Shown here: one piece after another, positions 1-64,000 of the stretch | Position numbering within the stretch: the stretch's first letter is position 1 | How the letters are laid out: each line of letters opens with the position of its first letter | Translations under genes and position numbers: made by a program | Notes under the pieces: generated by a model | Told to the model about the DNA's origin: nothing | The model's input: the letters and a program-made list of their open reading frames with translations, nothing else | The model's database searches: none | From: Macrostomum lignano | Lineage: Eukaryota | Assembly (NCBI GenBank): GCA_002269645.1 | Contig: NIVC01001671.1 | Coordinates: 188,969-252,968 of the forward strand | Length of the DNA stretch: 64,000 nucleotides | Direction of reading: 5' to 3'

Positions 1-3000
1 ATGTGGTCATAAATCACTACGGCAGCATGAACTACATCCCGCCTGGCATGTTCAAGTCCACCTGCAAAATTGACATCACCTGGTTTCCGTTCGATACTCA
101 GAAATGCGAGTTGAAGTTCGGCTCCTGGACTTATGATGGGGGCACCGTGGATTTGCGGTTCAAGTGCGACGACCCCAACCTGGACACGACCGAGAAAATC
201 CTGAAGGACCCGAAAAACTGTTCGGAGAAAGGGTCTGGCGACATATCGACTTATGTTGAGAGTGGCGAGTGGAACCTGGAAGGTATGCAAAACTTGATAA
301 GATTGTAATAGAGATTCACAATAGAGATTGTGAAAGATTGTAATAATCTATTGACAGCGAATGCTATTTCCCTTGATTAATTTGTAGTTTGATTGTACGC
401 TTTGATAATTTATTGATTTGTTATTTAATTCATTAATTGATTGATAGATCTGATTGATTGATTGATCTGTTTGATTGATTGATCTGATTGATTGATTGAT
501 CTGATTGATTGATTGATTTGATTGATTGATCTGATTGATTGATAGATCTGATTGATTGATTGATCTGATTGATTGATTGATCTGATTGATTGATTGATTT
601 GATTGATTGATTGATCTGATTGATTGATTGATCTGATTGATTGATAGATCTGATTGATTGATTTATTTGATTGATTGATCTGATTGATTGATAGATCTGA
701 TTGATTGATTGATCTGATTGATTGATTGATCTGATTGATTGATTGATCTGATTGATTGATTGATCTGATTGATTGATTGATCTGATTGATTGATTGATCT
801 GATTGATTGATTGATCTGATTGATTGATTGATTTGATTGATTGATTGATCTGATTGATTGATTGATCTGATTGATTGATAGATCTGATTGATTGATTGAT
901 TTGATTGATTGATTAATTGATTGATTGACCGACTGACTATTCATTGGTTGAATGAAATGTCACATTTACAATATTTTCTTAGTTCAACGATCTTTTATCA
1001 GACTTTAATATGGTTATAATCATTTAATTGAACTGCATATTCGGCAGTGAATAATCGGTAATTGGTTTAATCTCAAAGTGTTGAAATCTCAGAATCAGTT
1101 TTATTGCCGAAAAATCCAGGCATTTTTTAATGTTCGCCCAGCCAGAAAAATTTTTGACTCGTCCAACTTGCACGCAGGTTTACCGGGAGTGCGGACCAGC
1201 ATCCTATACGACTGCTGCCCCCTTCCATATATCGATCTGAAATTCTACCTGCTAATCCGCAGGCGCAAGCTTTATTACGTATTCAATTTAATTGGCCCCT
1301 GTTCGTTTCTGTCCTCGCTAGCCCTGCTCAGCTTCATCATACCGCCGGATGCTGGGGAAAAAGTCAGCTTCGGTAAAACAAAAATTTCGTTTTGAGGTCA
1401 CGTGGCATTGATTGATAGGTTAGCGATTCTTGGAAAGGACGGATGGCTGAAAAATATGGGAAAATCTTGGGTCTCCTGAATCTCAGGTCTCCTGAATCTC
1501 AGGTCTCCTGAATCTCAGGTCTCCTGAATCTCAGGTCTCCTGAATCTCAGGTCTCCTGAATCTCAGATCTCCTGAATCTCAGGTCTCCTGAATCTCAGGT
1601 CTCCTAAATCTCAGGTCTCCTGAATCTCAGGTCTCCTGAATCTCAGGTCTCCTGAATCTCAGGTCTCCTGAATCTCAGGTCTCCTGAATCTCAGGTCTCC
1701 TGAATCTCAGGTCTCCTGAATCTCAGGTCTCCTGAATCTCAGGTCTCCTGAATCTCAGGTCTCCTGAATCTCAGGTCTCCTGAATCTCAGGTCTCCTGAA
1801 TCTCAGGTCTCCTGAATCTCAGGTTATCGTTTAACCGTTGCTTAAAATTGACGACCAATTCTCGCACAAAATGCAACTTTAAGCGCCTAGCGTAAAAAGC
1901 ATTGCAAAGTTCATTTTGTACTTAATAAACCGGCAAACACGCTTAAAACCTTTAAGAGCACTCACTACATATTTTTAATTGAAAATGTGCGCTCGTAAAT
2001 AACGCGCAAAAATCAAAGCCGGAAAATGTTAACCTGTTTTGTCAGGCATGCCTGGCGTTAGAACGGCTCTTCTTTACGACTGCTGCCCGTTCCCGTTCAT
2101 CGATCTGAAGTACTGGATCAACATCCGCCGACGGACTTTGTACTATGGGTTTAATCTCATAATCCCCTGCGTGTTAATCTCCTCCATGGCGCTACTCACC
2201 TTCATGCTGCCACCGGATGCAGGAGAGAAGATATCGTTGGGTGAGTTTTTTGTTTAAATTTTTTGTTTATTGGTTTAAATTTATAACTTTCGGAATGATT
2301 TAGACATAGTTAAAGTTTATTTTTTTGAAGTTGTATGTAGAGAATGCAGGGAGAGTAAAGGGACATACAGGGAGATCAAAGCGAAATGCAGGGAGAGTGA
2401 AGGGAAATGCAGGGAGAGTGAAGGGAAATGCAGGGAGATCAAAGGGAAATGCAGGGAGATCAAAGGGAAATGAAGGGAGAGTGAAGGGAAATGCAGGGAG
2501 AGTGAAGGGAAATGCAGGGAGAGTGAAGGGGAATGCAGGGAGATCAAAGGGAAATGCAGGGAGATCAAAGGGAAATGCAGGGAGATCAAAGGGAAATGCA
2601 GGGAGATGAAAAGGAAATGCAGGGAAAGTCGAAAGGAATTGCATACCTATTTCAGAAAGAAGATCCAATAATGCGCAATGAATTCTTGAAAAATCACATT
2701 TTTCAGGTCAGGGCCACTCTATAAAAAAATTCGAGTTTTAAGTGCTTCTTCGATTTCTTATGCTAAGCACCTCGCAGAGCTATTAGAAAATTTCCATTTG
2801 CAAAAGAGCAGCAGCCATCTGTATTAAACTCGCAAACCGATTGGCGCAACATTTTCATACATGAACACGCAAAATATTGCTACACACTGATATTGCGCAA
2901 TCTATGGAATTTCACAATAAATTTACGATAAAAAACATTTAAATGCACACATACGCGCCCAGCCTACTGAATAAGAGTAGCACTGCAATAATCTCTAATT

Positions 3001-6000
3001 AAATAATTAATAATCCTAAATTGATTTAGGAAAAATTTATCTGTTAGACACACGAGTCTGACCTGTTATGTAACAAATCCATTTTGTTAGACAGATATGG
3101 AACATATTAGATAAATTATGTAAGTCTTTTAGACAGGGAAGGAACATGTTCGATAAATTATTTTAGTCTGTTAGACATTGAAGAAACATGTTAGATAAAT
3201 TAGTCTGTTAGACAGTGAAGGAACATGTTAGATAAATTAGTCTGTTAGACAGTGAAGGAACATGTTAGATAAATTATGTTAGTCTGTTAGACAGTGAAGG
3301 AACATGTTAGATAAATTATGTTAGTCTGTTAGACAGTGAAGGGACATGTTAGATAAATTATGTTAGTCTGTTAGACAGTGAAGGAACGTGTTAGATAAAT
3401 TATGTTAGTCTGTTAGACATTGAAGAAACATGTTAGATAAATTAGTCTGTTAGACAGTGAAGGAACATGTTAGATAAATTATGTTAGTTTGTTAGACAGT
3501 GAAGGAACATGTTAGATAAATTATGTTAGTCTGTTAGACAGTGAAGGAACATGTTAGATAAATTATGTTAGTCTGTTAGACAGTGAAGGGACATGTTAGA
3601 TAAATTATGTTAGTCTGTTAGACAGTGAAGGAACATGTTAGATAAATTATGTTAGTCTGTTAGACAGTGAAGGAACATGTTAGATAAATTATGTTAGTCT
3701 GTTAGACAGTGAAGGGACATGTTAGATAAATTATGTTAGTCTGTTAGACAGTGAAGGAACGTGTTAGATAAATTATGTTAGTCTGTTAGACATTGAAGAA
3801 ACATGTTAGATAAATTAGTCTGTTAGACAGTGAAGGGACATGTTAGATAAATTATGTTAGTTTGTTAGACAGTAAAGGAACATGTTAGATAAATTATGTT
3901 AGTCTGTTATACAGTAAAGGAACATGTTAGATAAATTATGTTAGTCTGTTAGACAGTGAAGGAACATGTTAGATAAATTATGTTAGTCTGTTAGACAGTA
4001 AAGGAACATGTTAGATAAATTATGTTAGTCTGTTAGACAGTGAAGGGACATGTTAGATAAATTATGTTAGTCTGTTAGACAGTGAAGGGACATGTTAGAT
4101 AAATTATGTTAGTCTGTTAGACAGTGAAGGAACATGTTAGATAAATTGATAGTCTGTTAGACAGAATTCGAACATTAGATGAATTCTGGTACAGCTGTTA
4201 GACAGAATTCGAACATTAGATGAATTCTGTTACAGCTGTTAGACTTGGTTCTAACACCTCATTATTAACAAGCAACTGATCGGTAAAATATGATTTATGA
4301 ATTTTACTTGGCGCAGGCGTCACCATCCTGCTCTCCCTGACCATGTTTTTGCTGCTTGTGGCTGACGCAATGCCGCAAACTTCGGAAGCGCTGCCGCTTA
4401 TTGGTGAGGGCGCTTTTTTCCTACTTTTAGTAGCATAATTCAGGTAATATGCTATTGAAAATTTGTTTCGTTTTGTGTACGTCGGTTTTTTGGCATGATT
4501 CTTAATAATTTTTGTGTGAATTCACTACGGTCTGTATAGATAGATTATACTAAAACTTTATTTTTGTTTACACAATTTCTCATTTTGGTCTGAAATTTTA
4601 GTTTGCGTCCGTCAGTCTGTCAGATTCTCAAACTAAAACTAAACAATAATTTCCAATCGACAAATTTAAAATGCCCATCCAAACTTTCCAAGAGACTTGC
4701 TTCAGAAAAAAGTAAAAATAAATTAATCAATAAGACTGTAATTATATTATTCTTACTAACAGTATTGATACAGTAGCTATAATATTATTTGATAATTTTA
4801 TTTAGGTGTCACAATTCTTCTATCGCTAACGGTATTTCTAATGATGGTTGCTGAGGCAATGCCGCCCACGTCAGACTCTGTGCCTGTGATAGGTGAGCTG
4901 CGAGATACTATACTTACTACTAAGTAGTAGGCGGGTAAAATTTACGATATCCACGCTTTTCGGTGCCCTATACATAATAAAAAAGTAATCTAATAACAGT
5001 ATAAAAACGCAATTAAGAAAATGAAATTTTTCTTTTCCTAATAAAAGCAGTATCGATTTTGTTAAACAGGTAAGTTTCTTTAATTTTGAAAAATCCGTTT
5101 GATAAAATTGAATTTGCTGTATCCTACATACAAGGCTGCACTTTAGCAGCTAAGAAGCCTTAAATTTGGTAAAGATGAAATCCATTAACAATGCTACAAT
5201 GTAGTTTTGATTGAAATTATGAAAAATGATAAATCTATTTTAGCATTGATTTCTCAAGAAATTTACTCCAGACAAAAATTTACCTAAAACGAGTTACCTT
5301 AAGTAAAGAAGTCCTGCAAAGCACTTAATTGTTAAACTATAGGATTTCGCTTTCTATTTCTGTGTCTAATTGTAATTTATGATAACAATGATTTTTCTAA
5401 TCAATTTTTGTTTTCCAATCAATTTTTTAAGTATTTTTTTCAGAAGTTGTAGAAATTTTTTCTGGTAAACTTTCAGGCATGTACTTTGCCTGCACCATGA
5501 TCATGTGCAGTCTATCAGTGGTGTTCACCGTGATTGTGCTCAACTACCATCACAGAGATGCCGAATCGCATCCAATTCCTAATTGGGTAAGAGTTTAAAG
5601 CGAATTTTGACTTCTTAAATACTATAGATTATCTAATGTTTTAGAGATAATCTCATGAGATGGATTCAGCGATAATCTCATGATATGAATTTAGCGATAA
5701 TCTCATGAGATGGATTCAGCAATAATCTCATGAGATGGATTTAGACATAATCTCCTGGGATGGATTCAGCGATAATCTCATGATATGAATTCAGATAATC
5801 TCATTCCAATAGATTTAGCGATAGCCTACAGAAGATTTCGACACAAACTAACAACTCCAAAACTCCCGTCGCCATGGCAACCAGGTGCGCCAGTTCATCT
5901 GCACCTACCTGGCCAGCATTCTTTGCATGCGCCGCATGCGCCGGGACACGGACTCGGAGCCGATCCGGATGAGGCGTCGCCGAACTCGCGGCGCCACCGG

Positions 6001-7062
6001 CGGAGGCAAACTGGGCACTTTCCGGGCCAGCGCATCCGCCGGCTCCGGCTTCGGCACAGAGCACCACAGGGAGCTGCTGGCGGATCACCACCAGCAGCAG
6101 GGAGGTGAGGGCGGAGATCGGATCGGAGAGGCGGAATAATCTCATGATAATCAGAGATATTCTCACCATACGAGTCGACACATTCTCACCATAAGAATAA
6201 TGAATAATCTCATCTAAACAAAGGATAATCTCACCATAGGAATTAGGGATAATCTCACCATAAGAAAAGCGAATTATCATACCATAAGAGTCTGGGATAA
6301 TGTATGATTAAGGATAGTCTCATCATAGAGATCATTGATAATCTTACCATAAGAATCAAAGATAATCTCACAAGAATCAGGGAAAATCTCACCAGAAGAA
6401 TCAGAGATAATCTCACCATAAGAATCGAGGATAATCTCACTACACGAATCAAGGATAATCTCATTAAAAAATCGAGGATAATCTCATAATAAGGATCTGG
6501 GATAATCTCACCATAAGAATCGAGCAGAATATCATCAAAAGAACCAAAGATAATATCACCATAAAAATCAATGATAATCTCACTATAAGAATCGAGGATA
6601 ATCTCACCATGAGAGTCGAGGATAATCTCACCATGAGAGTCGAGGATAATCTCACCATGAGAGTCGAGGATAATCTCATGCTGCCACGCCTCCCCAGGGC
6701 CAGCCTCGATGGAGCTGCGCGAACGCTCTTCAAAGTCGCTGCTGGCGAACGTGCTGGACCTGGAGGACAATTTTCGAGCATCCGCTGCCCAGGCCGCTGC
6801 GTCGAGGGCGCCACCGGTGTACGATGAGGTTCAGCAGCAGCAGCCGCCCTGCAGCGTGCGTTCCGAGCTCGCCGCCATCGTTCACGAACTTCGAATCGTC
6901 ACGCAGAAAATCTCCGATGATGTGGCGGACGGAGAAGTCAGCAGCGAGTGGAAATTCGCGGCCAGAGTGGTGGACAGACTCTGCCTCATCCTGTTCTCCT
7001 GCTTCACCATCATCTCGACATGCGCGATTCTGTTCTCTGCTCCGGATGTGTTTAAGGGATAA
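1..7062 (+). CDS. Nicotinic acetylcholine receptor alpha subunit, alpha7-like (5' part outside window). Exons: <1-282, [1178-1372 or 2046-2240], [4317-4403 or 4806-4892], 5477-5586, 5885-6104, 6698-7062
   Basis: Cys-loop [15 protein letters not shown], loop B WTY, loop C vicinal YDCC, GEK-M2, M3 [56 protein letters not shown]4, TAA 7060-7062. All junctions GT-AG with matching phases. Exon sizes 195/87/110 nt equal those I recall for CHRNA7 exons 7/8/9. Confidence 0.97.
437..935. repeat. (GATT)n microsatellite with GATCT variants in nAChR intron
   Basis: Direct reading; boundaries approximate. Confidence 0.95.
1178..1372 (+). CDS. nAChR alternative exon '7a' (loop C + M1 + M1-M2 linker), 195 nt, phase 1-1
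   Basis: cacgcag|GT...TTCG|gtaaaa; encodes [65 protein letters not shown]. Confidence 0.9.
1471..1823. repeat. 16-bp minisatellite AATCTCAGGTCTCCTG between exons 7a and 7b
   Basis: About 22 near-perfect copies. Confidence 0.95.
2046..2240 (+). CDS. nAChR alternative exon '7b' (loop C + M1 + M1-M2 linker), 195 nt, phase 1-1
   Basis: ttttgtcag|GC...TTGG|gtgagt; encodes [65 protein letters not shown]. Confidence 0.95.
2335..2620. repeat. 21-bp purine-rich minisatellite GGGAAATGCAGGGAGATCAAA
   Basis: Direct reading. Confidence 0.9.
3040..4250. repeat. 42-bp minisatellite AGTCTGTTAGACAGTGAAGGAACATGTTAGATAAATTATGTT between exons 7b and 8a
   Basis: Period 42 (e.g. 3241 to 3283); degenerate at both ends. 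Confidence 0.95.
4317..4403 (+). CDS. nAChR alternative exon '8a' (pore helix M2 + M2-M3 loop), 87 nt, phase 1-1
   Basis: gcgcag|GC...ATTG|gtgagg; encodes [29 protein letters not shown]. Missed by the ORF track because it is short. Confidence 0.9.
4806..4892 (+). CDS. nAChR alternative exon '8b' (pore helix M2 + M2-M3 loop), 87 nt, phase 1-1
   Basis: tttatttag|GT...ATAG|gtgagc; encodes [29 protein letters not shown]. Confidence 0.92.
5640..6680. repeat. Two related GATAATCTCA-core minisatellites (about 5640-5815, ~25 bp; about 6135-6680, ~22 bp) flanking exon 5885-6104
   Basis: Direct reading. Confidence 0.88.
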
Positions 7063-8919: not shown

Positions 8920-10017
8920 ATGAGCAAACAGCTGCAGACCCCAATCCCAGACTTTTCCACCTGTCTGGCATGGGTTAAGTTGGTCTCCGCAGGATTTCCA
9001 GGCTCGGGTAAAACCTCCCTAATCAAGCACTTCTGCGACAGCCGGTTTTCGGCAGGCTACCAGCCAACAGTTGGAGCGGACTACGGCTTCAAGGTGTTCA
9101 GGGTGGATGGCTTCGATCTGAGGGTGAACATGTGGGATCTGTCCGGTTATCCCGAGTACCTGGAGGTGAGAAATGAGCTCTACTCCGGTTGCGACGGAGT
9201 GCTGCTGACCATTGATCTCACGGAAGCAAAATCTGTAGCTAATATTGACGCTTGGATGAGAGAGATCGCTCAGTGCTGCCTTGGGAGTCCTGGGCAGCAG
9301 CAGCAGCAGAGCTCGATGCCAGATATTGTGCTTCTGGCTAATAAGGCAGATCTCAAGGATAAGAGACAGGTAATAAATCACTGCTGTTCTTATACTCGTA
9401 ACTGGCAAAATCAATAATATTCAGACATGACAAGAGTGAATCTCAAACCTAACAATTATGAGTGAATCTCAGATCTCACAAGAGTGAATCTCAGATCTCA
9501 CAAGAGTGAATCTCAGATCTCACAAGAGTGAATCTCAGATCTCACAAGAGTGAATCTCAGATCTCACAAGAGTGAATCTCAGATCTCACAAGAGTGAATC
9601 TCAGATCTCACAAGAGTGAATCTCAGATCTCACAAGAGTGAATATCAGATCTCACAAGACTGAATCTCGGATCTCAAAAGAGTGAATCTCAGACCTCACA
9701 AGAGTGAATCTCAAACCTGACAATCAAGAGTGAATCTCAGACCTCACAAGTCACAAGAGTGAATCCTCAGACCTCACAATAGTGAATCTCAGACCTGACA
9801 ATTAAGAGTGAATCTCAGACCTCAAGAGTAAATTTGAACGCACACACAGGTGACCCCTGCAGACGCAGCCAAAGCAGCAGCCAAGCACAAGCTGCATCTA
9901 TACGAGACCTCGGCCGCCACAGGCGAAGGCGTTGACAAGGCGTTCCGCGACCTTCTCCAACGAATTGTGCAACGAAATCGGGCGGCATGGGCGGCTCGCG
10001 GAGTGAAAATGGAGTGA
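8920..10017 (+). CDS. Rab-like small GTPase, RJL family (DNAJC27/Rbj-like GTPase domain without J domain), ~205 aa. Exons 8920-9369, 9850-10017
   Basis: G1 GFPGSGKT, G2 YQPTVG, G3 WDLSG, RJL-type YLEVRNELY, G4 NKAD, G5 ETSA in exon 2. CAG|gtaata and acacag|GTG in phase 0. TGA 10015-10017, no CAAX. Family assignment from remembered DNAJC27 sequence. Confidence 0.8.
9430..9830. repeat. 22-bp minisatellite AGAGTGAATCTCAGATCTCACA in the GTPase intron
   Basis: Direct reading. Confidence 0.92.
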
Positions 10018-20131: not shown

Positions 20132-20192
<61 letters not shown>

Positions 20193-20201
20193 TGACAGAC
20201 T

Positions 20202-20280
<79 letters not shown>

Positions 20281-20281
20281 T

Positions 20282-20324
<43 letters not shown>

Positions 20325-20325
20325 T

Positions 20326-20397
<72 letters not shown>

Positions 20398-20398
20398 C

Positions 20399-20465
<67 letters not shown>

Positions 20466-20466
20466 C

Positions 20467-20533
<67 letters not shown>

Positions 20534-20534
20534 C

Positions 20535-20581
<47 letters not shown>

Positions 20582-20582
20582 C

Positions 20583-20617
<35 letters not shown>

Positions 20618-32797: not shown

Positions 32798-32882
<85 letters not shown>

Positions 32883-33824
32883 CAGTCAGTCAGTCAGTCA
32901 GTCAGTCAGTCAGTCAGTCAGTCAGTCAGTCAGTCAGTCAGTCAGTCAGTCAGTCAGTCAGTCAGTCAGTCAGTCAGTCAGTCAGTCAGTCAGTCAGTCA
33001 GTCAGTCAGTCAGTCAGTCAGTCAGTCAGTCAGTCAGTCAGTCAGTCAGTCAGTCAGTCAGTCAGTCAGTCAGTCAGTCAGTCAGTCAGTCAGTCAGTCA
33101 GTCAGTCAGTCAGTCAGTCAGTCAGTCAGTCAGTCAGTCAGTCAGTCAGTCAGTCAGTCAGTCAGTCAGTCAGTCAGTCAGTCAGTCAGTCAGTCAGTCA
33201 GTCAGTCAGTCAGCTAGTTACTGATTCTCTTTCCAGGGCAAAAAGGCAATGGGAATCAGGAGATCCGACATGCGGATCTTGCTGGCTGCCCCAGGCACAA
33301 CAAGGTGGTCACCAAGTGGTCCGCCTGCTCAACCACCTGCGGAGTTGGCCAGTCGTCAAGGCTCACTAATGACAATGTGGAGTGCAAGACGATTCGAGAG
33401 ACTCGACTGTGCATGATGGCCGAGTGCGTTGCAGATCCCGCCGTGGTGAGCTGACAGATTTTATTGTTGTTATCACGGCTCACTTAAAATGTCAAAGAGG
33501 TGTAACAATGGACATTTTGCAACTCCACAGGAGGAGCAACGCTGTCGTTCAACCATTCGAGCAGAGAGGCCAATGAGTCTGACCTACACCGAAGACCAGG
33601 TGTCTCAGACATTGGGCGAAGGTCCCGCAACCCCTGTGCAGTGCCGCAGTGTCCGCCTCTGGAAGCCGAAATTCTGTTCTGGATGCCAGAGAAAACGTTG
33701 CTGCAGACCATTGAAGGTCAAGACGAAAATGGTGGAGTTTCAATGCGATGATGGGATCGGACGAGTTCGCCAGTGGGCCTGGATAAAACGGTGCATCTGC
33801 ACCAATAGAGGCTGCGACGTTTAG
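29393..33824 (+). CDS. CCN-family matricellular protein (signal peptide-IGFBP-VWC-TSP1-cystine knot). Exons 29393-29494, 32146-32353, 32469-32789, 33237-33445, 33531-33824
   Basis: Hydrophobic leader MFIKLFQSISLCQLLFCACLSAG; IGFBP CPRPCRC...RDGCGCCEVCARQLGEDC; VWC CHVNGRVYRDGEAF...CCKEWIC; TSP1 WSACSTTCGVGQSSRLTNDNVEC...ETRLC; CT KFCSGC...CCRP...VEFQC...IKRCIC. One module per exon, phases 0/1/1/0. The exon 2 acceptor is the least certain junction. Confidence 0.93.
29570..32090. repeat. 39-46-bp (mostly 42) minisatellite GCATCCATGCAGTG(A/T)CTCTCTGCAGTTAGTGGGTTG... filling CCN intron 1
   Basis: Direct reading; contains recurring variant blocks. Confidence 0.95.
32797..33212. repeat. Compound (TAGT)n then (CAGT)n microsatellite in CCN intron 3
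   Basis: Direct reading. Confidence 0.97.
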
Positions 33825-37327: not shown

Positions 37328-42832
<5,505 letters not shown>

Positions 42833-44236: not shown

Positions 44237-47200
44237 TCAAGACCAAGTCTCCATCTGGTACCGGCCAGTCCTTTGCCACTCTGCAAGCATCCCAGCTGCC
44301 TCAGCTTCATCAAAACCGCCGTGCACAGTCAGAGCAGCCTGCACAGCTGATAGAACCTCGCGCGGCATGGCGCCGGAGCTGCCGGCAACAATAACCGCGC
44401 CGCCGCCTAGCAACAGTAGCTTAGCAACGTCGGCACCCAGCTCGCGAATTCGATCTTGCACGTAGCATTTTGTCTGCTGGCCGCTGTCCGAAGTTGGCCG
44501 AGAAAACGCCGTAGCCAATTGGAACTTGTCCGGCCACAGACGAGACCACTCCAGCCAGTCGGACTGGAAGTAGAAATCTTTCTCCGGATGCCGGCAGCCG
44601 AAGAACACGAGAGTCTGGGCCGAGCCAGCAGCCGGTGCCTCATCGCCCTGCCCGTTGACGACCCCGTGTCGCTGCTGGACCAGACCTCGAAACGGCGCGA
44701 TCCCCGTGCCGGGACCGACCAGAACCAGCGGCACATCAACTGGCGGCACCCGAAGAGTGCCGCGCTGCAACCGGACAGTGACGACACTGCCAGGCCCAGC
44801 GCTGGCCAGATAGTTTGAGCACAGGCCCAGCCTCGGTTCGGACATGAGCTTGGATTTGTAGCGAACCACAGCAACAAGCAGGTCGAGACTTGAGCAGCCC
44901 GACTGGCCCAGACTGGCAATTGAGAAGCTTCGCGGTTGAATCGGTCTCAACAGGTCGAATAATCGACTCAATCGAATGCGAGAAGCCGACACGGGGAAGT
45001 CGCGCAGAGTTTCGGCTACAGTACGGCGAGGCCGGTTGCAATAGGCGGCCAGCTCGTCTACATCTCGTACAAACTCGCCTAGGCGTTCAATTTCCATGTC
45101 GAGTCGGCTCGAGTCTTCCTCAGTTGTAGTCGCGACCTCATCGCCGATGCCCATAGCGATTCGGCGAAGAGTTTCAAAGAAGCTACGGCGAGGCACGCAG
45201 CTGATGTCGAAATAGTTGGTTAGCAGCCAGCGCAGTGTCGGGCCAGCCGGCGGCAGGTCGGGCGGCGGCGGGAAGTTCGGATCGGACTGCGACACCCGCA
45301 GGCGAGTCTCCGGGTCCAGGTGCGACAAGGTGCTGAGCAGGCTGGAGACAGCGGATTGGCTGTTGCTGGGCAGGACTTGGAGAACGTCCCCGGGTTGGAA
45401 CGGGGACCAGAGGGTGGGCGACGGCGATTCAGCGCTTGTCGGCGCCGGACTCAGCGTGATGAGTCTGGTGTCCTGCGGCGAGAGGGTTGAGATGGAGGGC
45501 GAAGGGTGAGGTAGACTGGTGGGAGGAGGGTGACAGTTCAAGATGATGGGATAAGGGAAAGCTGAGGGCGGCAGAATGATAAATGGAATCTAAGAATGAG
45601 ATAGATGGAATCTAAGAATGAGATAGATGGAATCTAAGAATGAGATAGATGGAATCTAAGAACGAGATAAATGGAATCTAAGAATGAGATAGATGGAATC
45701 TAAGAATGAGATAGATGGAATCTAAGAATGAGATAAATGGAATCTAAGAATGAGATAGATGGAATCTAAGAATGAGATAAATGGAATCTAAGAATGAGAT
45801 AGATGGAATCTAAGAATGAGATAAATGGAATCTAAGAATGAGATAGATGGAATCTAAGAATGAGATAGATGGAATCTAAGAATGAGATAGATGGAATCTA
45901 AGAATGAGATAGATGGAATCTAAGAATGAGATAGATGGAATCTAAGAATGAGATAGATGGAATCTAAGAATGAGATAAATGGAATCTAAGAATGAGATAG
46001 ATGGAATCTAAGAATGAGATAGATGGAATCTAAGAATGAGATAGATGGAATCTAAGAATGAGATAAATGGAATCTAAGAATGAGATAGATGGAATCTAAG
46101 AATGAGATAAATGGAATCTAAGAATGAGATAAATGGAATCTAAGAATGAGATAGATGGAATCTAAGAATGAGATAAATGGAATCTAAGAATGAGATAAAT
46201 GGAATCTAAGAATGAGATAGATGGAATCTAAGAATGAGATAGATGGAATCTAAGAATGAGATAAATGGAATCTAAGGTTAAGATACGAGTAATGAAAGCT
46301 TTGAGGGTCAGATAGATGGAAGCCAAGATGAGATAACCAAAAATTATTTAGCGGCGATATATTAGAATTTAAGGGTGAGATAGATGAAATCTAAGGGTGG
46401 GATAAGTAGGAGCGTAGGGGTGCGATAAATGAAATCTAAGAGTGAGAAAAATGGAATCTAAGGGTGAGATAAATCGAATACAAGGGTGGGATAGATGAAA
46501 TCTAAGGGTGAGATAAATGGCAACTAAGGTGAAAATTGAATACAAGGGTGAGATGGATGGAATCTAAGGGTGAGATAAAAGTCAACTAAAGGCTGAGATA
46601 AATGGCAACTAAGGTGAGATAAATGGAATGCAAGGGTGAGATAGATTTAATCTTAGGATGAGATAAATGGCAACTAAGGTGAGATAAATTGAATGCAAGG
46701 GTGAGATAGATGTAATCTTAGGATGAGATAAATGGCAACTAAGGTGAGATAAATGGGAATGGGAAAGTTGAAATCCTCACCTGAAAATGATCCTCCGCGG
46801 TAACCCGCTTATTAGCAACAATGCGAGCCAATTGATAACCAGTTTCTGGCGGCGGCAATCTCGGACCATCTGCACCTACTACTACTACTACTACTTGATT
46901 AGCGGCAGTAGTATGAGTAGAATCTGTAGATTTCTCAGCTGCAATAGCCTCAACGCGATAGAGCGGCGGCAGAGGAGCGTCAAGACAGCTGCCAACGCAG
47001 GCGCAACGGACGCTAAAAGTGTCCGTCAGCAGAGCGGACACTGTCTCAGCGAATGGCAGGAAGGCCTGGTCGGGTCCCAGTTCGTCCTGATCGTTGGCCA
47101 GAGCCAGGGGGCAGGCGGAATTGGCGCCCAGCAGGCATAAACGGCGATGCAGTTTCTTGGCCACGAAATTGTACTGCAGGTAACTGGAGTCACCGAAACC

Positions 47201-48598
47201 AATTAGGCAGAAACGGAGTCGAGCCGTGGCTGAGTCACCGTTGCCATGGGGATTATTGGCTGTTGTGGAATTTTGAGAATGAGGATAAAGTTAAGGTTAA
47301 CGCTTGGTTAGATTGCGAAAATAGCTGTAATGTAACTCACAGAGCTTGGAATACCGACTGCCTTTGGGATAAATCCGATAAGACACCGGGATTACCAGGT
47401 AGGAGAATCGAAAAGCACAGGTGAGACAACCGAAACAAGCACAGGTTAGATACCCGGGATAAGCGCAGGTAAGACACCCGGGGTTATCACAGGTACGACA
47501 CCCGGGATAAGCACAGGTAAGACACCCGGGGTAATCACAGGTAAGACAGTTGGAATAATCACAGGTAAGACACCCGGGATAATCACAGGTACGACACCCG
47601 GGATAAGCACAGGTACGACACCCGGGATAAGCACAGGTAAGACACCCGGGATAAGCACAGGTAAGACACCCGAGCTAATCACAGGTAAGCCACCGGGATA
47701 AGCACAGGTAAGACAACCGGAATAAAGCACAGGTAAGACACTCAGGAAAATCACAGGTGAGACACCCGGGATAATCACAGGTAAGATACTCCAGTTGAGC
47801 ACAGGTAAGACACCAGGATAATCACAGGTAAGACACTGGGATAATCAAAAGTAAGACACCCGGGATAATCACAGGTAAGACACCGGGATAAGCACAGGTA
47901 AGACACTCCAGTTGAGCACAGGTAAGACACCAGGATAATCACAGGTAAGACACTGGGATAATCACAAGTAAGACACCCGGGATAATCACAGGTAAGACAC
48001 CGGGATAAGCACAGGTAAGACACCTGGGATAAAGCACAGGTAAGACACCCAGGAAATTCACAGGTGAGACACCCGGAATAATCACAGGTAAGACACTCCA
48101 GTTGAGCACAGGTAAGACACTGGGATAATCACAAGTAAGAAACCTGGGATAATTACAGGTAAGACACCGGTATAAAGCATCGACAAGACACTCACCGCTC
48201 TGGCTGCTCCCGTTGCCATGGAGACAGCCTTGAGTCAGCCGCCTGCTCATAGCCAGGCGCCAGAACTTGCGCATATTGGCTGGTGGATCGCCCTGTCCCG
48301 TGGTTGAACAAGCCGCGATAAGCAGCTGCTGGCGAAGATCGTTGCTAGGCAAACAATCAGCCGCCGTTTCCAAGGCAACAATGCCGACTTCGTCTAACGA
48401 GCCGAAGCGACAGTTTAAACCGTGAGATCGGGCAAAATTGTACAGGGTCAGGGCGGCGTCTTGGGCCACACCGGTCTCGCTGCCGTAGGCTATGGTCAGT
48501 TGGGGAGGCTGACGCGCAGGTTCAGGATGATGAAGCTGACTGGAAGTACCGCCACCACCGGTTCCAGACTCTTCGCCGTTGTTACAGGGCGGAACCAT
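44237..48598 (-). CDS. NDOR1: NADPH-dependent diflavin oxidoreductase 1 (Tah18 orthologue), ~695 aa. Exons 48598-48196, 47229-46781, 45472-44237
   Basis: Flavodoxin IAYGSETGVAQD, CSTTGQGDPPANMRKFWR, FGDSSYLQYNFVAKKLHRRL; HFQ|DTRLI; PRSFSIAS; GLCSNYL; LVGPGTGIAPFRG; FFGCR; AFSR; YVQD; VAGSSGAMP; C-terminal RYQMETWS. Confidence 0.95.
45580..46760. repeat. 22-bp minisatellite AAGAATGAGATA(G/A)ATGGAATCT, degenerate after ~46280, in NDOR1 intron 2
   Basis: Period 22 (45601 to 45623). Confidence 0.93.
47400..48170. repeat. ~23-24-bp minisatellite GCACAGGTAAGACACCCGGGATAA in NDOR1 intron 1
   Basis: Direct reading. Confidence 0.92.
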
Positions 48599-48689: not shown

Positions 48690-51600
48690 AGACGGTACTT
48701 GTCAGTAGCTATGGCTAACTTGTCAGTGGCTGTGGGTAACTTGTCAGTGGCTGTGGGTAACTTGTCAGTTGCTATGGCTAACTTGTCAGTCGTTATGGAC
48801 AACTTGTCAGTGGCTATGGCTAACTTGTCAGTCGTTATGGATAACTTTTCAGTGGCTATGGGTAACTTGTCAGTGGCTATGGGTAACTTGTCAGTGGCTA
48901 TGGGTAACTTGTCAGTGGCTGTGGGTAACTTGTCAGTTGCTATGGCTAACTTGTCAGTCGTTATGGACAACTTGTCAGTGGCTATAGCTAACTTGTCAGT
49001 CGTTATGGATAACTTTTCAGTGGCTATGGGTAACTAGTCAGTGGCTGTGGGTAACTTGTCAGTGGCTATGGCTAACTTGTCAGTCGTTATGGATAACTTG
49101 TCAGTGGCTATGGGTAACTTGTCAGTGGCTGTGGGTAACTTGTCAGTGGCTATGGGTAACTTGTCAGTGGCTATGGGTAACTTGTCAGTCGTTATGGATA
49201 ACTTGTCAGTCGTTATGGACAACTTGTCAGTGGCTATGGCTAACTTGTCAGTCGTTATGGATAACTTTTCAGTGGCTATGGGTAACTTGTCAGTGGCCAT
49301 TGGTAACTTGTCAGCGGCTGTGGGTAACTTGTCAGTGGCTATGGCTAACTTGTCAGTCGTTATGGATAACTTGTCAGTGGCTATGGGTAACTTGTCAGTG
49401 GCTGTGGGTAACTTGTCAGTGGCTATGGGTAACTTGTCAGTGGCTGTGGGTAACTTGTCAGTGGTTGTGGGTAACTTGTCAGTGGCTATGGGTAACTTGT
49501 CAGTGGCTATGGGTAACTTGTCAGTGGCTATGGGTAACTTGTCAGTCGTTATGGATAACTTGTCAGTGGCTATGGCTAACTTGTCAGTCGTTATGGATAA
49601 CTTGTCAGTGGCTATGGGTAACTTGTCAGTGGCTATAGGTAACTTGTCAGTGGCCATGGGTAACTTGTCAGTGGCTGTGGGTAACTTGTCAGTGGCTATG
49701 GGTAACTTGTCAGTGGCTATGGGTAACTTGTCAGTGGCCATTGGTAACTTGTCAGTGGCTATGGGTAACTTGTCAGTGGCTGTGGGTAACTTGTCAGTGG
49801 TTGTGGGTAACTTGTCAGTGGCTGTGGGTAACTTGTCAGTAGGCATGGCTAACTTGTCAGTGGCTATGGGTAACTTGTCAGTGGCCATTAGTAACTTGTC
49901 AGTGGCTATGGGTAACTTGTCAGTGGCTGTGGGTAACTTGTCAGTGGCTATGGGTAACTTGTCAGTGGCTATGGGTAACTTGTCAGTGGCTATGGGTTAC
50001 TTGTCAGTGGCTATGGGTAACTTGTCAGTGGCTATGGGTAACTTGTCAGTGGGTATGGGTAACTTGTCAGTGGCCATGGGTAACTTGTCAGTGGCTGTGG
50101 GTAACTTGTCAGTGGCTATGGGTAACTTGTCAGTGGCTATGGGTAACTTGTCAGTGGGTATGGGTAACTTGTCAGTGGCCATGGGTAACTTGTCAGTGGC
50201 TGTGGGTAACTTGTCAGTGGCTATGGGTAACTTGTCAGTGGCTATGGGTAACTTGTCAGTGGCCATTGGTAACTTGTCAGTGGCTATGGGTAACTTGTCA
50301 GTGGCTGTGGGTAACTTGTCAGTGGTTGTGGGTAACTTGTCAGTGGCTGTGGGTAACTTGTCAGTGGGCATGGCTAACTTGTCAGTGGCTATGGGTAACT
50401 TGTCAGTGGCCATGGGTAACTTGTCAGTGGCTGTGGGTAACTTGTCAGTGGCTATGGGTAACTTGTCAGTGGCTATGGGTAACTTGTCAGTGGCCATTGG
50501 TAACTTGTCAGTGGCTATGGGTAACTTGTCAGTGGCTGTGGGTAACTTGTCAGTGGTTGTGGGTAACTTGTCAGTGGCTGTGGGTAACTTGTCAGTAGGC
50601 ATGGCTAACTTGTCAGTGGCTATGGGTAACTTGTCAGTGGCTATGGGTAACTTGTCAGTGGCCATTAGTAACTTGTCAGTGGCTATGGGTAACTTGTCAG
50701 TGGCTGTGGGTAACTTGTCAGTGGCTATGGGTAACTTGTCAGTGGCTATGGGTAACTTGTCAGTGGCTATGGGTTACTTGTCAGTGGCTATGGGTAACTT
50801 GTCAGTGGCTATGGGTAACTTGTCAGTGGCTATGGGTAACTTGTCAGTGGCCATGGGTAACTTGTCAGTGGCTGTGGGTAACTTGTCAGTGGCTATGGGT
50901 AACTTGTCAGTGGGTATGGGTAACTTGTCAGTGGCCATGGGTAACTTGTCAGTGGCTGTGGGTAACTTGTCAGTGGCTATGGGTAACTTGTCAGTGGCTA
51001 TGGGTAACTTGTCAGTGGCCATTGGTAACTTGTCAGTGGCTATGGGTAACTTGTCAGTGGCTGTGGGTAACTTGTCAGTGGCTGTGGGTAACTTGTCAGT
51101 GGTTGTGGGTAACTTGTCAGTGGCTGTGGGTAACTTGTCAGTAGGCATGGCTAACTTGTCAGTGGCTATGGGTAACTTGTCAGTGGCTATGGGTAACTTG
51201 TCAGTGGCCATTAGTAACTTGTCAGTGGCTATGGGTAACTTGTCAGTGGCTGTGGGTAACTTGTCAGTGGCTGTGGGTAACTTGTCAGTGGCTGTGGGTA
51301 ACTTGTCAGTAGGCATGGCTAACTTGTCAGTGGCTATGGGTAACTTGTCAGTGGTTGTGGGTAACTTGTCAGTGGCTGTGGGTAACTTGTCAGTAGGCAT
51401 GGCTAACTTGTCAGTGGCTATGGGTAACTTGTCAGTGGTTGTGGGTAACTTGTCAGTGGTTGTGGGTAACTTGTCAGTGGCTATGGGTAACTTGTCAGTG
51501 GCTGTGGGTAACTTGTCAGTGGGCATGGGTAACTTGTCAGTGGCTATGAGTAACTTGTCAGTGGCTATGGGTAACTTGTCAGTGGCTGTGGGTAACTTGT

Positions 51601-54600
51601 CAGTGGTTGTGGGTAACTTGTCAGTGGCTGTGGGTAACTTGTCAGTAGGCATGGCTAACTTGTCAGTGGCTATGGGTAACTTGTCAGTGGCTATGGGTAA
51701 CTTGTCAGTGGCCATTAGTAACTTGTCAGTGGCTATGGGTAACTTGTCAGTGGCTGTGGGTAACTTGTCAGTGGCTATGGGTAACTTGTCAGTGGCTATG
51801 GGTAACTTGTCAGTGGCTATGGGTAACTTGTCAGTGGTATGGGTAACTTGTCAGTGGCCATGGGTAACTTGTCAGTGGCTGTGGGTAACTTGTCAGTGGC
51901 TATGGGTAACTTGTCAGTGGCTATGGGTAACTTGTCAGTGGGTATGGGTAACTTGTCAGTGGCCATGGGTAACTTGTCAGTGGCTGTGGGTAACTTGTCA
52001 GTGGCTATGGGTAACTTGTCAGTGGCTGTGGGTAACTTGTCAGTGGTTGTGGGTAACTTGTCAGTGGCTGTGGGTAACTTGTCAGTAGGCATGGCTAACT
52101 TGTCAGTGGCTATGGGTAACTTGTCAGTGGCCATGGGTAACTTGTCAGTGGCTGTGGGTAACTTGTCAGTGGCTATGGGTAACTTGTCAGTGGCTATGGG
52201 TAACTTGTCAGTGGCTGTGGGTAACTTGTCAGTGGTTGTGGGTAACTTGTCAGTGGCTGTGGGTAACTTGTCAGTAGGCATGGCTAACTTGTCAGTGGCT
52301 ATGGGTAACTTGTCAGTGGTTGTGGGTAACTTGTCAGTGGTTGTGGGTAACTTGTCAGTGGCTATGGGTAACTTGTCAGTGGCTGTGGGTAACTTGTCAG
52401 TGGGCATGGGTAACTTGTCAGTGGCTATGAGTAACTTGTCAGTGGCTATGGGTAACTTGTCAGTGGCTGTGGGTAACTTGTCAGTGGCTGTGGGTAACTT
52501 GTCAGTGGCTATGGGTAACTTGTCAGTGGCTATGGGTAACTTGTCAGTGGCCATTGGTAACTTGTCAGTGGCTATGGGTAACTTGTCAGTGGCTGTGGGT
52601 AACTTGTCAGTGGCCATTGGTAACTTGTCAGTGGCTATGGGTAACTTGTCAGTGGCTGTGGGTAACTTGTCAGTGGTTGTGGGTAACTTGTCAGTGGCTG
52701 TGGGTAACTTGTCAGTGGGCATGGCTAACTTGTCAGTGGCTATGGGTAACTTGTCAGTGGCCATGGGTAACTTGTCAGTGGCTGTGGGTAACTTGTCAGT
52801 GGCTATGGGTAACTTGTCAGTGGCTATGGGTAACTTGTCAGTGGCCATTGGTAACTTGTCAGTGGCTATGGGTAACTTGTCAGTGGCTGTGGGTAACTTG
52901 TCAGTGGTTGTGGGTAACTTGTCAGTGGCTGTGGGTAACTTGTCAGTGGGCATGGCTAACTTGTCAGTGGCTATGGGTAACTTGTCAGTGGCTATGGGTA
53001 ACTTGTCAGTGGCCATGTAACTTGTCAGTGGCTATGGGTAACTTGTCAGTGGCTGTGGGTAACTTGTCAGTGGCTATGGGTAACTTGTCAGTGGCTATGG
53101 GTAACTTGTCAGTGGCTATGGGTAACTTGTCAGTGGCTATGGGTAACTTGTCAGTGGCTATGGGTAACTTGTCAGTGGGTATGGGTAACTTGTCAGTGGC
53201 CATGGGTAACTTGTCAGTGGCTGTGGGTAACTTGTCAGTGGCTATGGGTAACTTGTCAGTGGGTATGGGTAACTTGTCAGTGGCCATGGGTAACTTGTCA
53301 GTGGCTGTGGGTAACTTGTCAGTGGCTATGGGTAACTTGTCAGTGGCTATGGGTAACTTGTCAGTGGCCATTGGTAACTTGTCAGTGGCTATGGGTAACT
53401 TGTCAGTGGCTGTGGGTAACTTGTCAGTGGCTGTGGGTAACTTGTCAGTGGTTGTGGGTAACTTGTCAGTGGCTGTGGGTAACTTGTCAGTAGGCATGGC
53501 TAACTTGTCAGTGGCTATGGGTAACTTGTCAGTGGCTATGGGTAACTTGTCAGTGGCCATTAGTAACTTGTCAGTGGCTATGGGTAACTTGTCAGTGGCT
53601 GTGGGTAACTTGTCAGTGGCTGTGGGTAACTTGTCAGTGGCTGTGGGTAACTTGTCAGTGGCATGGTAACTTGTCAGTGGCTATGGGTAACTTGTCAGTG
53701 GTTGTGGGTAACTTGTCAGTGGCTGTGGGTAACTTGTCAGTGGCATGGTAACTTGTCAGTGGCTATGGGTAACTTGTCAGTGGTTGTGGGTAACTTGTCA
53801 GTGGTTGTGGTAACTTGTCAGTGGCTATGGGTAACTTGTCAGTGGCTGTGGGTAACTTGTCAGTGGGCATGGGTAACTTGTCAGTGGCTATGAGTAACTT
53901 GTCAGTGGCTATGGGTAACTTGTCAGTGGCTGTGGGTAACTTGTCAGTGGCCATTGGTAACTTGTCAGTGGCTATGGGTAACTTGTCAGTGGCTGTGGGT
54001 AACTTGTCAGTGGCTGTGGGTAACTTGTCAGTGGTTGTGGTAACTTGTCAGTGGCTGTGGGTAACTTGTCAGTGGCATGGTAACTTGTCAGTGGCTATGG
54101 GTAACTTGTCAGTGGCTATGGGTAACTTGTCAGTGGCCATTGTAACTTGTCAGTGGCTATGGGTAACTTGTCAGTGGCTGTGGGTAACTTGTCAGTGGCT
54201 GTGGGTAACTTGTCAGTGGCTGTGGGTAACTTGTCAGTGGCATGGTAACTTGTCAGTGGCTATGGTAACTTGTCAGTGGTTGTGGTAACTTGTCAGTGGC
54301 TGTGGGTAACTTGTCAGTGGCATGGTAACTTGTCAGTGGCTATGGGTAACTTGTCAGTGGCTTGGGTAACTTGTCAGTGGTTGTGGGTAACTTGTCAGTG
54401 GCTATGGGTAACTTGTCAGTGGCTATGGGTAACTTGTCAGTGGCTATGGTAACTTGTCAGTGGCTATGGGTAACTTGTCAGTGGCTGTGGGTAACTTGTC
54501 AGTGGCTATGGGTAACTTGTCAGTGGCTGTGGGTAACTTGTCAGTGGTTGTGGGTAACTTGTCAGTGGCTATGGGTAACTTGTCAGTGGCTATGGGTAAC

Positions 54601-63600: not shown

Positions 63601-64000
63601 GGTAACTTGTCAGTGGCTGTGGGTAACTTGTCAGTGGCTGTGGGTAACTTGTCAGTGGTTGGGTAACTTGTCAGTGGCTGTGGGTAACTTGTCAGTAGGC
63701 ATGGCTAACTTGTCAGTGGCTATGGTAACTTGTCAGTGGCTATGGTAACTTGTCAGTGGCCATTAGTAACTTGTCAGTGGCTGTGGGTAACTTGTCAGTG
63801 GCTGTGGGTAACTTGTCAGTGGGCTGGGTAACTTGTCAGTGGCTGTGGGTAACTTGTCAGTGGCATGGTAACTTGTCAGTGGCTATGGGTAATTGTCAGT
63901 GGTTGTGGGTAACTTGTCAGTGGCTGTGGTAACTTGTCAGTGGCATGGCTAACTTGTCAGTGCTATGGTAACTTGTCAGTGGTTGTGGGTAACTTGTCAG
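48690..64000. repeat. 21-bp satellite GGGTAACTTGTCAGTGGCT(A/G)T, >15 kb, roughly 700+ copies, runs off the window
   Basis: Direct reading; source of all MGNLSVA/VTCQWLW/ATDKLP ORFs. Confidence 0.98.

Follow-up and report, generated by a model that had tools for sequence, protein, structure and literature searches.

Two adjacent pairs of duplicated exons in an alpha7-like nicotinic acetylcholine receptor gene of Macrostomum lignano as candidates for mutually exclusive splicing

When two neighbouring exons of a receptor gene are each present in two copies, the question arises whether the copies are alternatives, one of which is taken up per mRNA, and what such a choice would change in the encoded protein. 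This question is raised by a 64-kb stretch of the genome of the flatworm Macrostomum lignano (64,000 nucleotides (nt); assembly GCA_002269645.1, contig NIVC01001671.1, forward-strand positions 188,969 to 252,968), hereafter called the window, to which all positions refer unless another sequence is named. Positions 1-7062 (+) contain the 3′ two-thirds of one intact gene for an alpha7-like nicotinic acetylcholine receptor (nAChR) subunit, in which exons 7 and 8 are each duplicated in the order 7a-7b-8a-8b. A sequence-only reading of the same DNA had interpreted these exons as a cassette from which up to four subunits are made. The analysis presented here points to one copy per cluster being chosen, i.e. 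to mutually exclusive use of 7a or 7b and of 8a or 8b, with an estimated probability of about 0.68. Tandem duplication of two neighbouring exons has produced two adjacent clusters, the first (7a or 7b) encoding the tip of loop C, the pre-M1 segment and transmembrane helix 1 (TM1), and the second (8a or 8b) the pore helix TM2 together with the first part of the M2-M3 linker. According to this model, every mature mRNA would contain one exon per cluster, which would result in two to four subunit isoforms.

At the genomic level, clusters of mutually exclusive exons are recognized by criteria of the WebScipio/Kassiopeia type, namely as neighbouring, homologous candidates of equal length and phase with intact splice sites. 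Both M. lignano pairs show every one of these genomic characteristics of mutually exclusive exons that arose by tandem duplication. Within each pair, the copies lie next to each other in the same orientation, separated by non-coding sequence only, and the coordinates, lengths (195 nt for each exon 7, 87 nt for each exon 8) and phases given by the sequence-only reading were reproduced (see table). All four acceptors end with AG, all four donors begin with GT, and none of the four exons contains an in-frame stop codon, so that the eight splice sites described earlier are indeed intact; for exon 7a, the acceptor is cacgcag followed by G and the donor TCG followed by gtaaaaca. Each of the four possible combinations of 7a or 7b with 8a or 8b leads to a single open frame of 1257 nt that runs from exon 6 to the stop codon at 7060-7062. 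A tblastn scan of the whole window yielded exactly two copies of exon 7 and two of exon 8, and no third copy of either exon was detected in these 64 kb.

The identity of the gene is supported by several features of the predicted protein. Of the solved structures, human alpha7 matches it best (E = 5e-79), and the Pfam ligand-binding domain (PF02931) as well as the Pfam transmembrane region (PF02932) were detected in both isoforms tested, 7a+8b and 7b+8a. The Cys-loop, with two cysteines 13 residues apart, is encoded in exon 6. Both 7a and 7b contain the vicinal cysteine pair YDCC in loop C, a mark of alpha-type subunits, and both carry the -1′ glutamate (GEK) typical of cation-selective members. 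From its sequence, the gene is thus predicted to encode an alpha-type, alpha7-like nAChR subunit of the Cys-loop receptor family.

Table. Exons and introns of the alpha7-like nAChR gene in the M. lignano window
Feature	Position	Strand	Length (nt)	Remarks
Exon 6	1..282	+		cut by window start; frame begins at base 3; ends in phase 1; Cys-loop and flatworm-specific Cys-containing insertion
Intron 6	283..1177	+	895	GC 0.29; 17-nt minisatellite at 436-928
Exon 7a	1178..1372	+	195	phase 1-1; loop C LYDCCPLPY, pre-M1, TM1, start of M1-M2 loop
Intron 7a-7b	1373..2045	+	673	16-nt minisatellite at 1470-1824 makes up 355 nt of the intron
Exon 7b	2046..2240	+	195	phase 1-1; loop C LYDCCPFPF, pre-M1, TM1
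Intron 7b-8a	2241..4316	+	2076	21-nt satellite at 2343-2629; 42-nt satellite at 3085-4164
Exon 8a	4317..4403	+	87	phase 1-1; TM2 from 4′ onward and start of M2-M3 linker; D-type
Intron 8a-8b	4404..4805	+	402	GC 0.28
Exon 8b	4806..4892	+	87	phase 1-1; TM2, canonical alpha7 E-type
Intron 8b-9	4893..5476	+	584	in-frame alternative acceptor at 5443/5444
Exon 9	5477..5586	+	110	end of M2-M3 linker, TM3; constitutive
Exon 10	5885..6104	+	220	start of cytoplasmic loop
Exon 11	6698..7062	+	365	rest of cytoplasmic loop, MA helix, TM4, stop codon TAA at 7060-7062

Equal length and intact borders would be of little interest if one copy of each pair were already decaying, and the way in which the copies differ is therefore central. 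At the amino acid level, 7a and 7b are identical in 43 of 64 internal codons and 8a and 8b in 19 of 28; the values of the sequence-only reading, 44/65 and 20/29, are obtained when the split glycine codon is counted as well. Nucleotide identity amounts to 122/195 (63%) for exon 7 and 58/87 (67%) for exon 8. The differences are strongly biased towards synonymous sites: by Nei-Gojobori counts, the proportions of synonymous and nonsynonymous differences (pS and pN) are 0.82 and 0.23 for the exon 7 pair and 0.75 and 0.17 for the exon 8 pair, with Fisher p values for the synonymous excess of 2e-12 and 7e-7, respectively. This comparison, which had been suggested earlier as a check by the ratio of nonsynonymous to synonymous changes (dN/dS), indicates purifying selection on both pairs. 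When the observed nucleotide divergence was scattered randomly in neutral simulations (20,000 runs for exon 7), the observed amino acid identity was matched in 0 of the 20,000 runs for exon 7 and in 0.6% of the runs for exon 8. In both pairs, synonymous sites are saturated while an amino acid identity of 67-68% persists. Furthermore, nearly all of the most conserved columns, defined as those conserved to at least 90% among 136-144 homologous segments, are retained (10/11 in 7a, 11/11 in 7b, and 5/5 in both 8a and 8b). Since the differences are biased in this manner, both copies of each pair are judged to have been kept as coding sequence by purifying selection since old duplications, and the selection data argue strongly against a long-dead pseudo-exon.

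The same divergence bears on the possibility that the pairs are an artefact of the assembly, created when collapsed haplotypes or the homeologues of a polyploid genome were stitched together. The genome of M. lignano is very rich in repeats, minisatellites are found throughout the window, and the exact duplication of a 776-nt stretch containing exon 7 in the Opisthorchis viverrini assembly (see below) shows that such errors can occur. However, the copies are only 63-67% identical in DNA and their synonymous sites are saturated, which, as the sequence-only reading had already argued, is too much divergence for haplotypes. A misjoined gene copy would moreover not yield the order 7a-7b-8a-8b, the introns flanking the copies are unrelated in sequence to one another, and the series 7a+7b+8a recurs in all three separately annotated gene models of M. 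lignano (see below). An assembly artefact is hence exceedingly improbable, and the earlier proposal of exon-level duplications inside one alpha7-like gene agrees with a single intact gene that contains exactly two copies of each exon.

Several observations weigh against the mutually exclusive use of two functional copies per pair. A loss of function that affected one copy very recently would escape pairwise dN/dS. The GC content at third codon positions is 0.46 in exon 8b, compared to 0.61-0.84 in the other exons, and the polypyrimidine tract as well as the donor of exon 7a look weak; both are mild warning signs and could mean that the exon concerned is seldom used. Among the potential RNA pairings of the introns, none was significant, as the energy of the best duplex was equalled in 35 of 183 dinucleotide shuffles (19%). 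Finally, the recorded M. lignano protein models of this gene all carry 7a and 7b in tandem and omit 8b, and if these UniProt models were based on cDNA, they would contradict mutual exclusion.

Some of these points would fit a model in which the gene makes a single protein, the other member of each pair (most likely 7a and 8b) being a silent relic or a pseudo-exon of very rare use. Besides the low third-position GC content of 8b and the weaker-looking splice signals of 7a, such a model could account for the fact that the gene predictor skipped 8b and for the faster evolution of 7a, which with nine derived residues, compared to three in 7b, is the more divergent copy (again a mild warning sign). 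On the other hand, amino acid identity has persisted at saturated synonymous sites, and both 7a and 8b have open frames, intact AG/GT borders and nearly all invariant residues. Exon 8b is still identical to the TM2 exon of insect and snail homologs in 24 of 30 positions despite its old split from 8a, and the combination of a divergent with a canonical exon 7 is retained in other animals as well. Taken together, a silent relic appears quite improbable. Exon 7a also shows one Leu/His difference among three M. lignano gene models.

The protein models deserve a closer look, as they would be the most direct objection to mutual exclusion. UniProt entry A0A1I8HTP0 (481 amino acids), which was retrieved by an exhaustive HMMER search, could be rebuilt from the window with 481/481 matching residues by joining exon 6 from an internal ATG at position 27, exons 7a, 7b and 8a, exon 9 extended to position 5444, exon 10 and exon 11. 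The entries A0A1I8H5A2 and A0A1I8H9W9 are near-identical M. lignano models from other loci and also contain 7a+7b+8a. Taken at face value, the three models would suggest that both copies of a pair are included in tandem, which would duplicate TM1 and/or TM2. Such double inclusion would stay in frame, and alpha6 transcripts that jointly include exons 3a and 3b have been described in Bombyx (PMC2045683) and Ixodes (PMC13578988). However, with their internal exon 6 start codon, the unusual acceptor at 5444 and an end five residues early, the models look like ab initio predictions. Automated models of other animals string alternative exons together likewise, with four exon 8 copies concatenated in the Ephemera model and two exon 7 copies each in those of Armadillidium and Amphibalanus. 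Additionally, an extra TM1 would be expected to invert the downstream topology, and the 3a+3b form of tick alpha6 was non-functional in oocytes (PMC13578988). Tandem inclusion as the normal mode of expression is therefore considered very improbable. With regard to choosing one copy per cluster, since tandem 3a+3b alpha6 transcripts exist in silkworm and tick, a certain leakiness of the exclusion may simply be tolerated.

As annotations, the public models (window 27-7047) are faulty in several respects: they are truncated at the N-terminus, carry 7a and 7b in tandem, lack 8b, extend exon 9 and end five residues before the stop codon. The acceptor used for the extended exon 9 (tttttttcag followed by AAGTTG) is located 33 nt upstream of exon 9, and its use would add 11 residues (5444-5476) to the M2-M3 linker.

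What would be exchanged by the choice of exon 8 can be read from the two TM2 types. Exon 8a encodes a D-type TM2 with 13′ Met, 16′/17′ Leu-Leu and 20′ Asp, exon 8b an E-type TM2 with 13′ Val, 16′/17′ Met-Met and 20′ Glu, and the first residues of the linker differ as well. In vertebrate alpha7, mutagenesis of the pore positions 13′, 16′, 17′ and 20′ and of the linker affects gating, desensitization and Ca2+ permeability.

With respect to their origin, 8a is identical to exon 8 of Opisthorchis and Schistocephalus in 26 of 30 positions, whereas 8b reaches only 19 of 30 in this comparison, its resemblance being to the insect and snail TM2 exon mentioned above. In neighbour-joining trees, 8a grouped with neodermatan exon 8 to the exclusion of 8b in 282 of 300 bootstrap replicates, while 8a and 8b were sisters in 2 of 300. 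Orthologs of the gene are found in the parasitic flatworms Opisthorchis, Clonorchis, Schistocephalus and Schistosoma (ShAR1-beta-like), and the genomic loci of O. viverrini, S. mansoni and Schistocephalus contain a single exon 8 of the D-type; the snail and bryozoan orthologs also have one exon 8, in their case of the E-type. The simplest reading of these data would be that exon 8 was duplicated before the split of Macrostomorpha and Neodermata, after which one copy turned into the D-type and the E-type disappeared from the parasites. Alternatively, 8b may have been imported from a paralog by gene conversion; no candidate donor paralog of M. lignano was found among the nameable search hits. 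A deep common origin of 8a and the fourth exon 8 variant of a mayfly was also considered, but is unsupported, as the latter fell into the flatworm D-type clade in only 74 of 300 bootstrap replicates.

The exon 7 copies differ mainly in the helix they encode. At the position of the second conserved loop C tyrosine, 7a has Tyr and 7b has Phe, the latter being present in trematodes as well. The TM1 of 7b hardly differs from the one in other alpha7-like genes of spiralians, and 7b is closer than 7a to exon 7 of Opisthorchis (66% compared to 54% identity). When one copy is exchanged for the other, roughly every second residue on the TM1 face changes, as does the position that follows the pre-M1 arginines (Lys/Thr). 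In trees of the whole exon, 7a and 7b were sisters in 261 of 300 bootstrap replicates, and in 158 of 200 when metagenome sequences (see below) were added. When the exon was divided, the loop C halves of 7a and 7b grouped together in 189 of 200 replicates, as loop C halves cluster by species, while the TM1 halves were sisters in 0 of 200. The dating of a Macrostomum-specific exon 7 duplication from the whole-exon tree was consequently dropped, because its signal is confined to the loop C half. Instead, the TM1 half of 7a grouped with the upstream exon 7 copies of metagenome contigs (exact clade in 136 of 200 replicates, clade without 7b in 155 of 200). This lends moderate support to the orthology of a divergent "a"-type exon 7 across animals, a grouping for which long-branch attraction is a real risk and for which about five shared derived residues speak in favour and about five against.

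These results require a change in how the exon 7 choice is described. The earlier claim that the copies provide two ligand-binding faces was overstated, since their loop C halves are each other's closest relatives and the differences sit in TM1. Judged by the alignments, the two exon 7 types are distinguished by TM1 and the pre-M1 residue and are better called alternative TM1 helices combined with a loop C that switches between Tyr and Phe at one position. Within species, the loop C halves appear homogenized, which may reflect gene conversion or co-evolution with the rest of the binding site. A swap of exon 7 would thus be expected to affect gating, assembly or the sensitivity to lipids and modulators rather than to alter agonist recognition to a large extent. 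The two pairs also seem to have different histories: 8a represents the TM2 type of parasitic flatworms and 8b the canonical alpha7 type, whereas exon 7 is a mosaic.

If one copy per cluster is indeed chosen, the exclusion would have to be enforced in some way. Three hard-wired mechanisms are ruled out by the anatomy of the gene. Steric hindrance does not apply, as 673 nt of intron separate 7a from 7b and 402 nt separate 8a from 8b; U2/U12 incompatibility does not apply either, as all four donors are of the U2-type GT[AG]A. Nonsense-mediated decay is excluded as the enforcer, as the sequence-only reading had noted for double inclusion: 195 and 87 are multiples of 3, and both double inclusion and double skipping stay in frame. 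This leaves the choice to splice-site competition, which trans-acting factors or RNA structure would have to direct. Within the 5.2-kb region, the most stable long-range duplex pairs 1418-1456 with 4665-4703 (free energy (dG) -29 to -30 kcal/mol) and would bring the donor of 7a beside the acceptor of 8b.

This duplex is one of the arguments for a stricter arrangement, in which the two choices are not free but coordinated, exon 7 dictating exon 8, so that only certain pairs are made, e.g. 7b+8a as the ancestral flatworm form and 7a+8b as the alternative. Such a coupling would be in line with the observations that 7b and 8a are both closest to the single exons of parasitic flatworms and that the M. 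lignano paralog A0A1I8H0I3 combines a 7b-like TM1 with an 8a-like TM2. However, given the result of the dinucleotide shuffles reported above, the energy of the duplex (-30 kcal/mol) is at chance level; the pairing was accordingly rejected as evidence for a coordinated choice and is kept as a lead only. Overall, coordinated pairs are regarded as unlikely. The a/b labels should in any case not be read as denoting co-evolved pairs, as the copies nearest to the single exons of parasitic flatworms are 7b and 8a. With one copy chosen per cluster, and because of this proximity and the composition of the paralog, 7b+8a would be the probable default flatworm isoform, to which 7a and 8b were added as variants.

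A further potential pairing involves the 21-nt satellite at 2343-2629, in which nine nucleotides are exactly complementary (CAGGGAGAG / CTCTCCCTG) to the 5′ part of exon 8a (4333-4345) but not to 8b. This pairing was rejected, as its energy of about -25 kcal/mol per repeat was matched in 147 of 183 shuffles and is hence at the level of chance.

The sequence-only reading had stated that neither a duplicated exon for loop C and TM1 nor duplication of both adjacent exons was known in any nAChR. At the genome level this turned out to be wrong. The alpha6-like locus of the isopod Armadillidium vulgare (JAWIIT010000013.1, 92878-103289) contains two 195-nt copies of exon 7 followed by five 87-nt copies of exon 8, all with AG/GT borders and phase 1-1, and the exon 7 copies are 71% identical in amino acids; the corresponding protein KAL7640434.1 concatenates both exon 7 copies. 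Likewise, model KAF0300447.1 of the barnacle Amphibalanus amphitrite has two tandem exon 7 copies. Armadillidium therefore resembles M. lignano in having adjacent clusters at the same two exons, and the crustacean pairs, too, cluster by species in their loop C halves and by copy type in their TM1 halves. In contrast to M. lignano, however, the canonical exon 7 lies upstream and the divergent one downstream in crustaceans, and the isopod has five instead of two copies of exon 8. Because of this opposite order, and since the crustacean copies group with neither 7a nor 7b, the crustacean duplication looks independent of the one in M. lignano.

Exon 7 pairs were also found on four metagenome contigs of animal origin (JAAUYG010003235.1, JAAUXW010066473.1, JAAUYA010205548.1 and JAAUXT010015703.1), each of which carries an alpha7-like gene with two 195-nt copies and intact splice sites. 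As in M. lignano, the divergent copy lies upstream and the canonical one downstream, and the TM1 of the downstream copy is almost identical to that of 7b. These genes differ from the M. lignano gene in their single E-type exon 8, in lacking the exon 6 insertion described below, and in the short intron between the copies (76-177 nt), with which steric hindrance would be possible there. The best identities of the contig proteins are about 74-77% and are equal for snail and insect. The search of related loci that the sequence-only reading had called for thus had a mixed outcome, with exon 7 pairs in crustaceans and metagenome contigs, but a single exon 8 in Neodermata, snail and bryozoan. A further metagenome contig, JAAUXT010095583.1 (7309-8276 and 11026-17510), contains an alpha7-like gene with two copies of exon 6 and five copies of the 110-nt exon 9 (TM3), with AG/GT borders throughout, and these arrays look like additional alternative-exon clusters in the same gene family. 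Tandem exon duplication hence seems to be recurrent in invertebrate alpha7-like genes.

In insect alpha6 (Dalpha6), mutually exclusive use of exons 8a, 8b and 8c was reportedly described by Grauso in 2002. The insect system and exon 8 of M. lignano have in common the same exon of the same subunit group, which encodes TM2 and is present in two or three tandem copies of in-frame length; homology of its position, its length of 87 nt and its phase 1-1 was checked on the isopod alpha6-like locus and on the mayfly model with its four concatenated variants. The two systems differ in that they belong to Arthropoda and Platyhelminthes, respectively, and in that insects also duplicate exon 3, which in M. 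lignano lies outside the window. We know of no report of a duplicated exon 7 in insects. Among other Cys-loop receptors, the RDL GABA receptor gene of Drosophila combines exon 3 (a/b) with exon 6 (c/d) into a two-by-two set of subunits. It resembles the M. lignano gene in its two clusters of two alternative exons each; in RDL, however, the clusters are not adjacent and both encode parts of the extracellular domain instead of TM1 and TM2.

For the exon 8 variants of insect alpha6, mutually exclusive splicing with one-of-n use has been shown experimentally (Jin 2007, PMC1919356). The alpha8 subunit of Bombyx mori possesses an alternative exon 7 that arose by tandem duplication, encodes TM2-TM3 and has copies that are 86% identical (PMC2045683). 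As in M. lignano, this is a tandemly duplicated nAChR exon for transmembrane helices, but it concerns another subunit and a non-homologous exon, results from a recent duplication and forms a single cluster. In the literature searched, the nAChR alternative exons are those of exons 3 and 8 of insect and tick alpha6, exon 4 of Dalpha4 and exon 7 of Bombyx alpha8, and neither a pair of loop C and TM1 exons, nor adjacent exon 7 and 8 clusters, nor splicing of flatworm nAChRs was found there. The RefSeq isoforms of mite, bryozoan and horsehair-worm homologs showed no swaps of exon 7 or 8 and differed only at the N-terminus or by small deletions.

Three other loci show repeated segments at the same exons. 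In O. viverrini (KL596727.1), exon 7 is present twice (44607-44804 and 45641-45838) within a 776-nt stretch, 100% identical; because of this identity it was rejected as an alternative exon pair, its likely cause being an error of the assembly or a duplication that happened very recently. In the bryozoan Watersipora subatra (OY755159.1, 11146-12122), a 35-nt unit that stems from codons 1 to 11 of exon 8 is repeated about 27 times in tandem in the intron upstream of this exon. The CHRNA7 model CAH1240967.1 of the amphioxus Branchiostoma lanceolatum has eight near-identical TM2 segments in a row, which reflect either read-through of tandem exon 8 units by the predictor or a problem of the assembly.

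Alternative TM2 exons of insect alpha6 are a textbook example of mutually exclusive splicing in receptor diversification and bear on spinosyn resistance. The M. lignano gene is the first probable case of this device that we found outside arthropods, here with an added, neighbouring cassette for TM1. The arrangement is less novel than the sequence-only reading had assumed. A broader synthesis would regard the two pairs as old, modular cassettes for swapping helices: the split into E- and D-type exon 8 would predate the divergence of Macrostomorpha and Neodermata, with loss of the E-type in the parasites; the exon 7 pair would be orthologous to the pairs of other invertebrates, its loop C homogenized by gene conversion or co-evolution; and M. 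lignano would have kept an ancestral spiralian state, with TM1 and TM2 alternatives possibly used in coordinated pairs. This picture is tentative and, as a whole, rather doubtful. Should one copy per cluster be chosen, pore-forming and supporting helices could be swapped in combination from a single gene, providing a natural experiment on how TM1 and TM2 tune the gating and permeability of alpha7-type receptors, and the function of single isoforms would be accessible in M. lignano, which is amenable to transgenesis. The comparison also illustrates that automated models, including UniProt entries, mis-annotate such clusters by concatenating the copies.

Apart from the duplicated exons, exon 6 contains a flatworm-specific insertion (180-260) that adds two cysteines to the segment from the Cys-loop to loop C (RFKCDD...KNCSEKG; the version of Opisthorchis is RLQCIDSSVPDCSING). 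It is common to the orthologs of Opisthorchis, Clonorchis, Schistocephalus and Schistosoma and was not present in the snail, arthropod, vertebrate or metagenome homologs. Close to loop F, the insertion may give rise to an additional loop held by a disulphide bond.

The window is also rich in tandem repeats. Minisatellites occur in all introns of the nAChR gene except 8a-8b and 8b-9; in addition to those listed in the table, they are located at 5646-5804 and 6149-6678. Many further minisatellites are found up to position 48 kb. Inside and outside the gene, the arrays have units of 16-45 nt in 6-90 copies, and the unit differs from array to array. Extended tracts of (ACAG)n, (AGAC)n and (AGTC)n lie at 20135-20617, 37417-37953 and 32800-33213. 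The last 15.3 kb (48697-64000) are filled by a 21-nt satellite with the consensus ACTTGTCAGTGGCTATGGGTA, of which there are about 736 copies with 91% matches; this region has a strong and constant GC skew of +0.40 and an AT skew of -0.31.

Two further coding regions were recognized in the window as well. Just downstream of the nAChR gene, an open reading frame at 8920-9417 (+) encodes a small GTPase domain of the Ras/Rab family (Pfam Ras, E = 4e-23). Exons of a diflavin reductase-like gene are located at 44237-45541 (-) and 47939-48598 (-); they encode FAD_binding_1 and NAD_binding_1 domains, with Flavodoxin_1 further upstream, and resemble NDOR1/MTRR/CPR.

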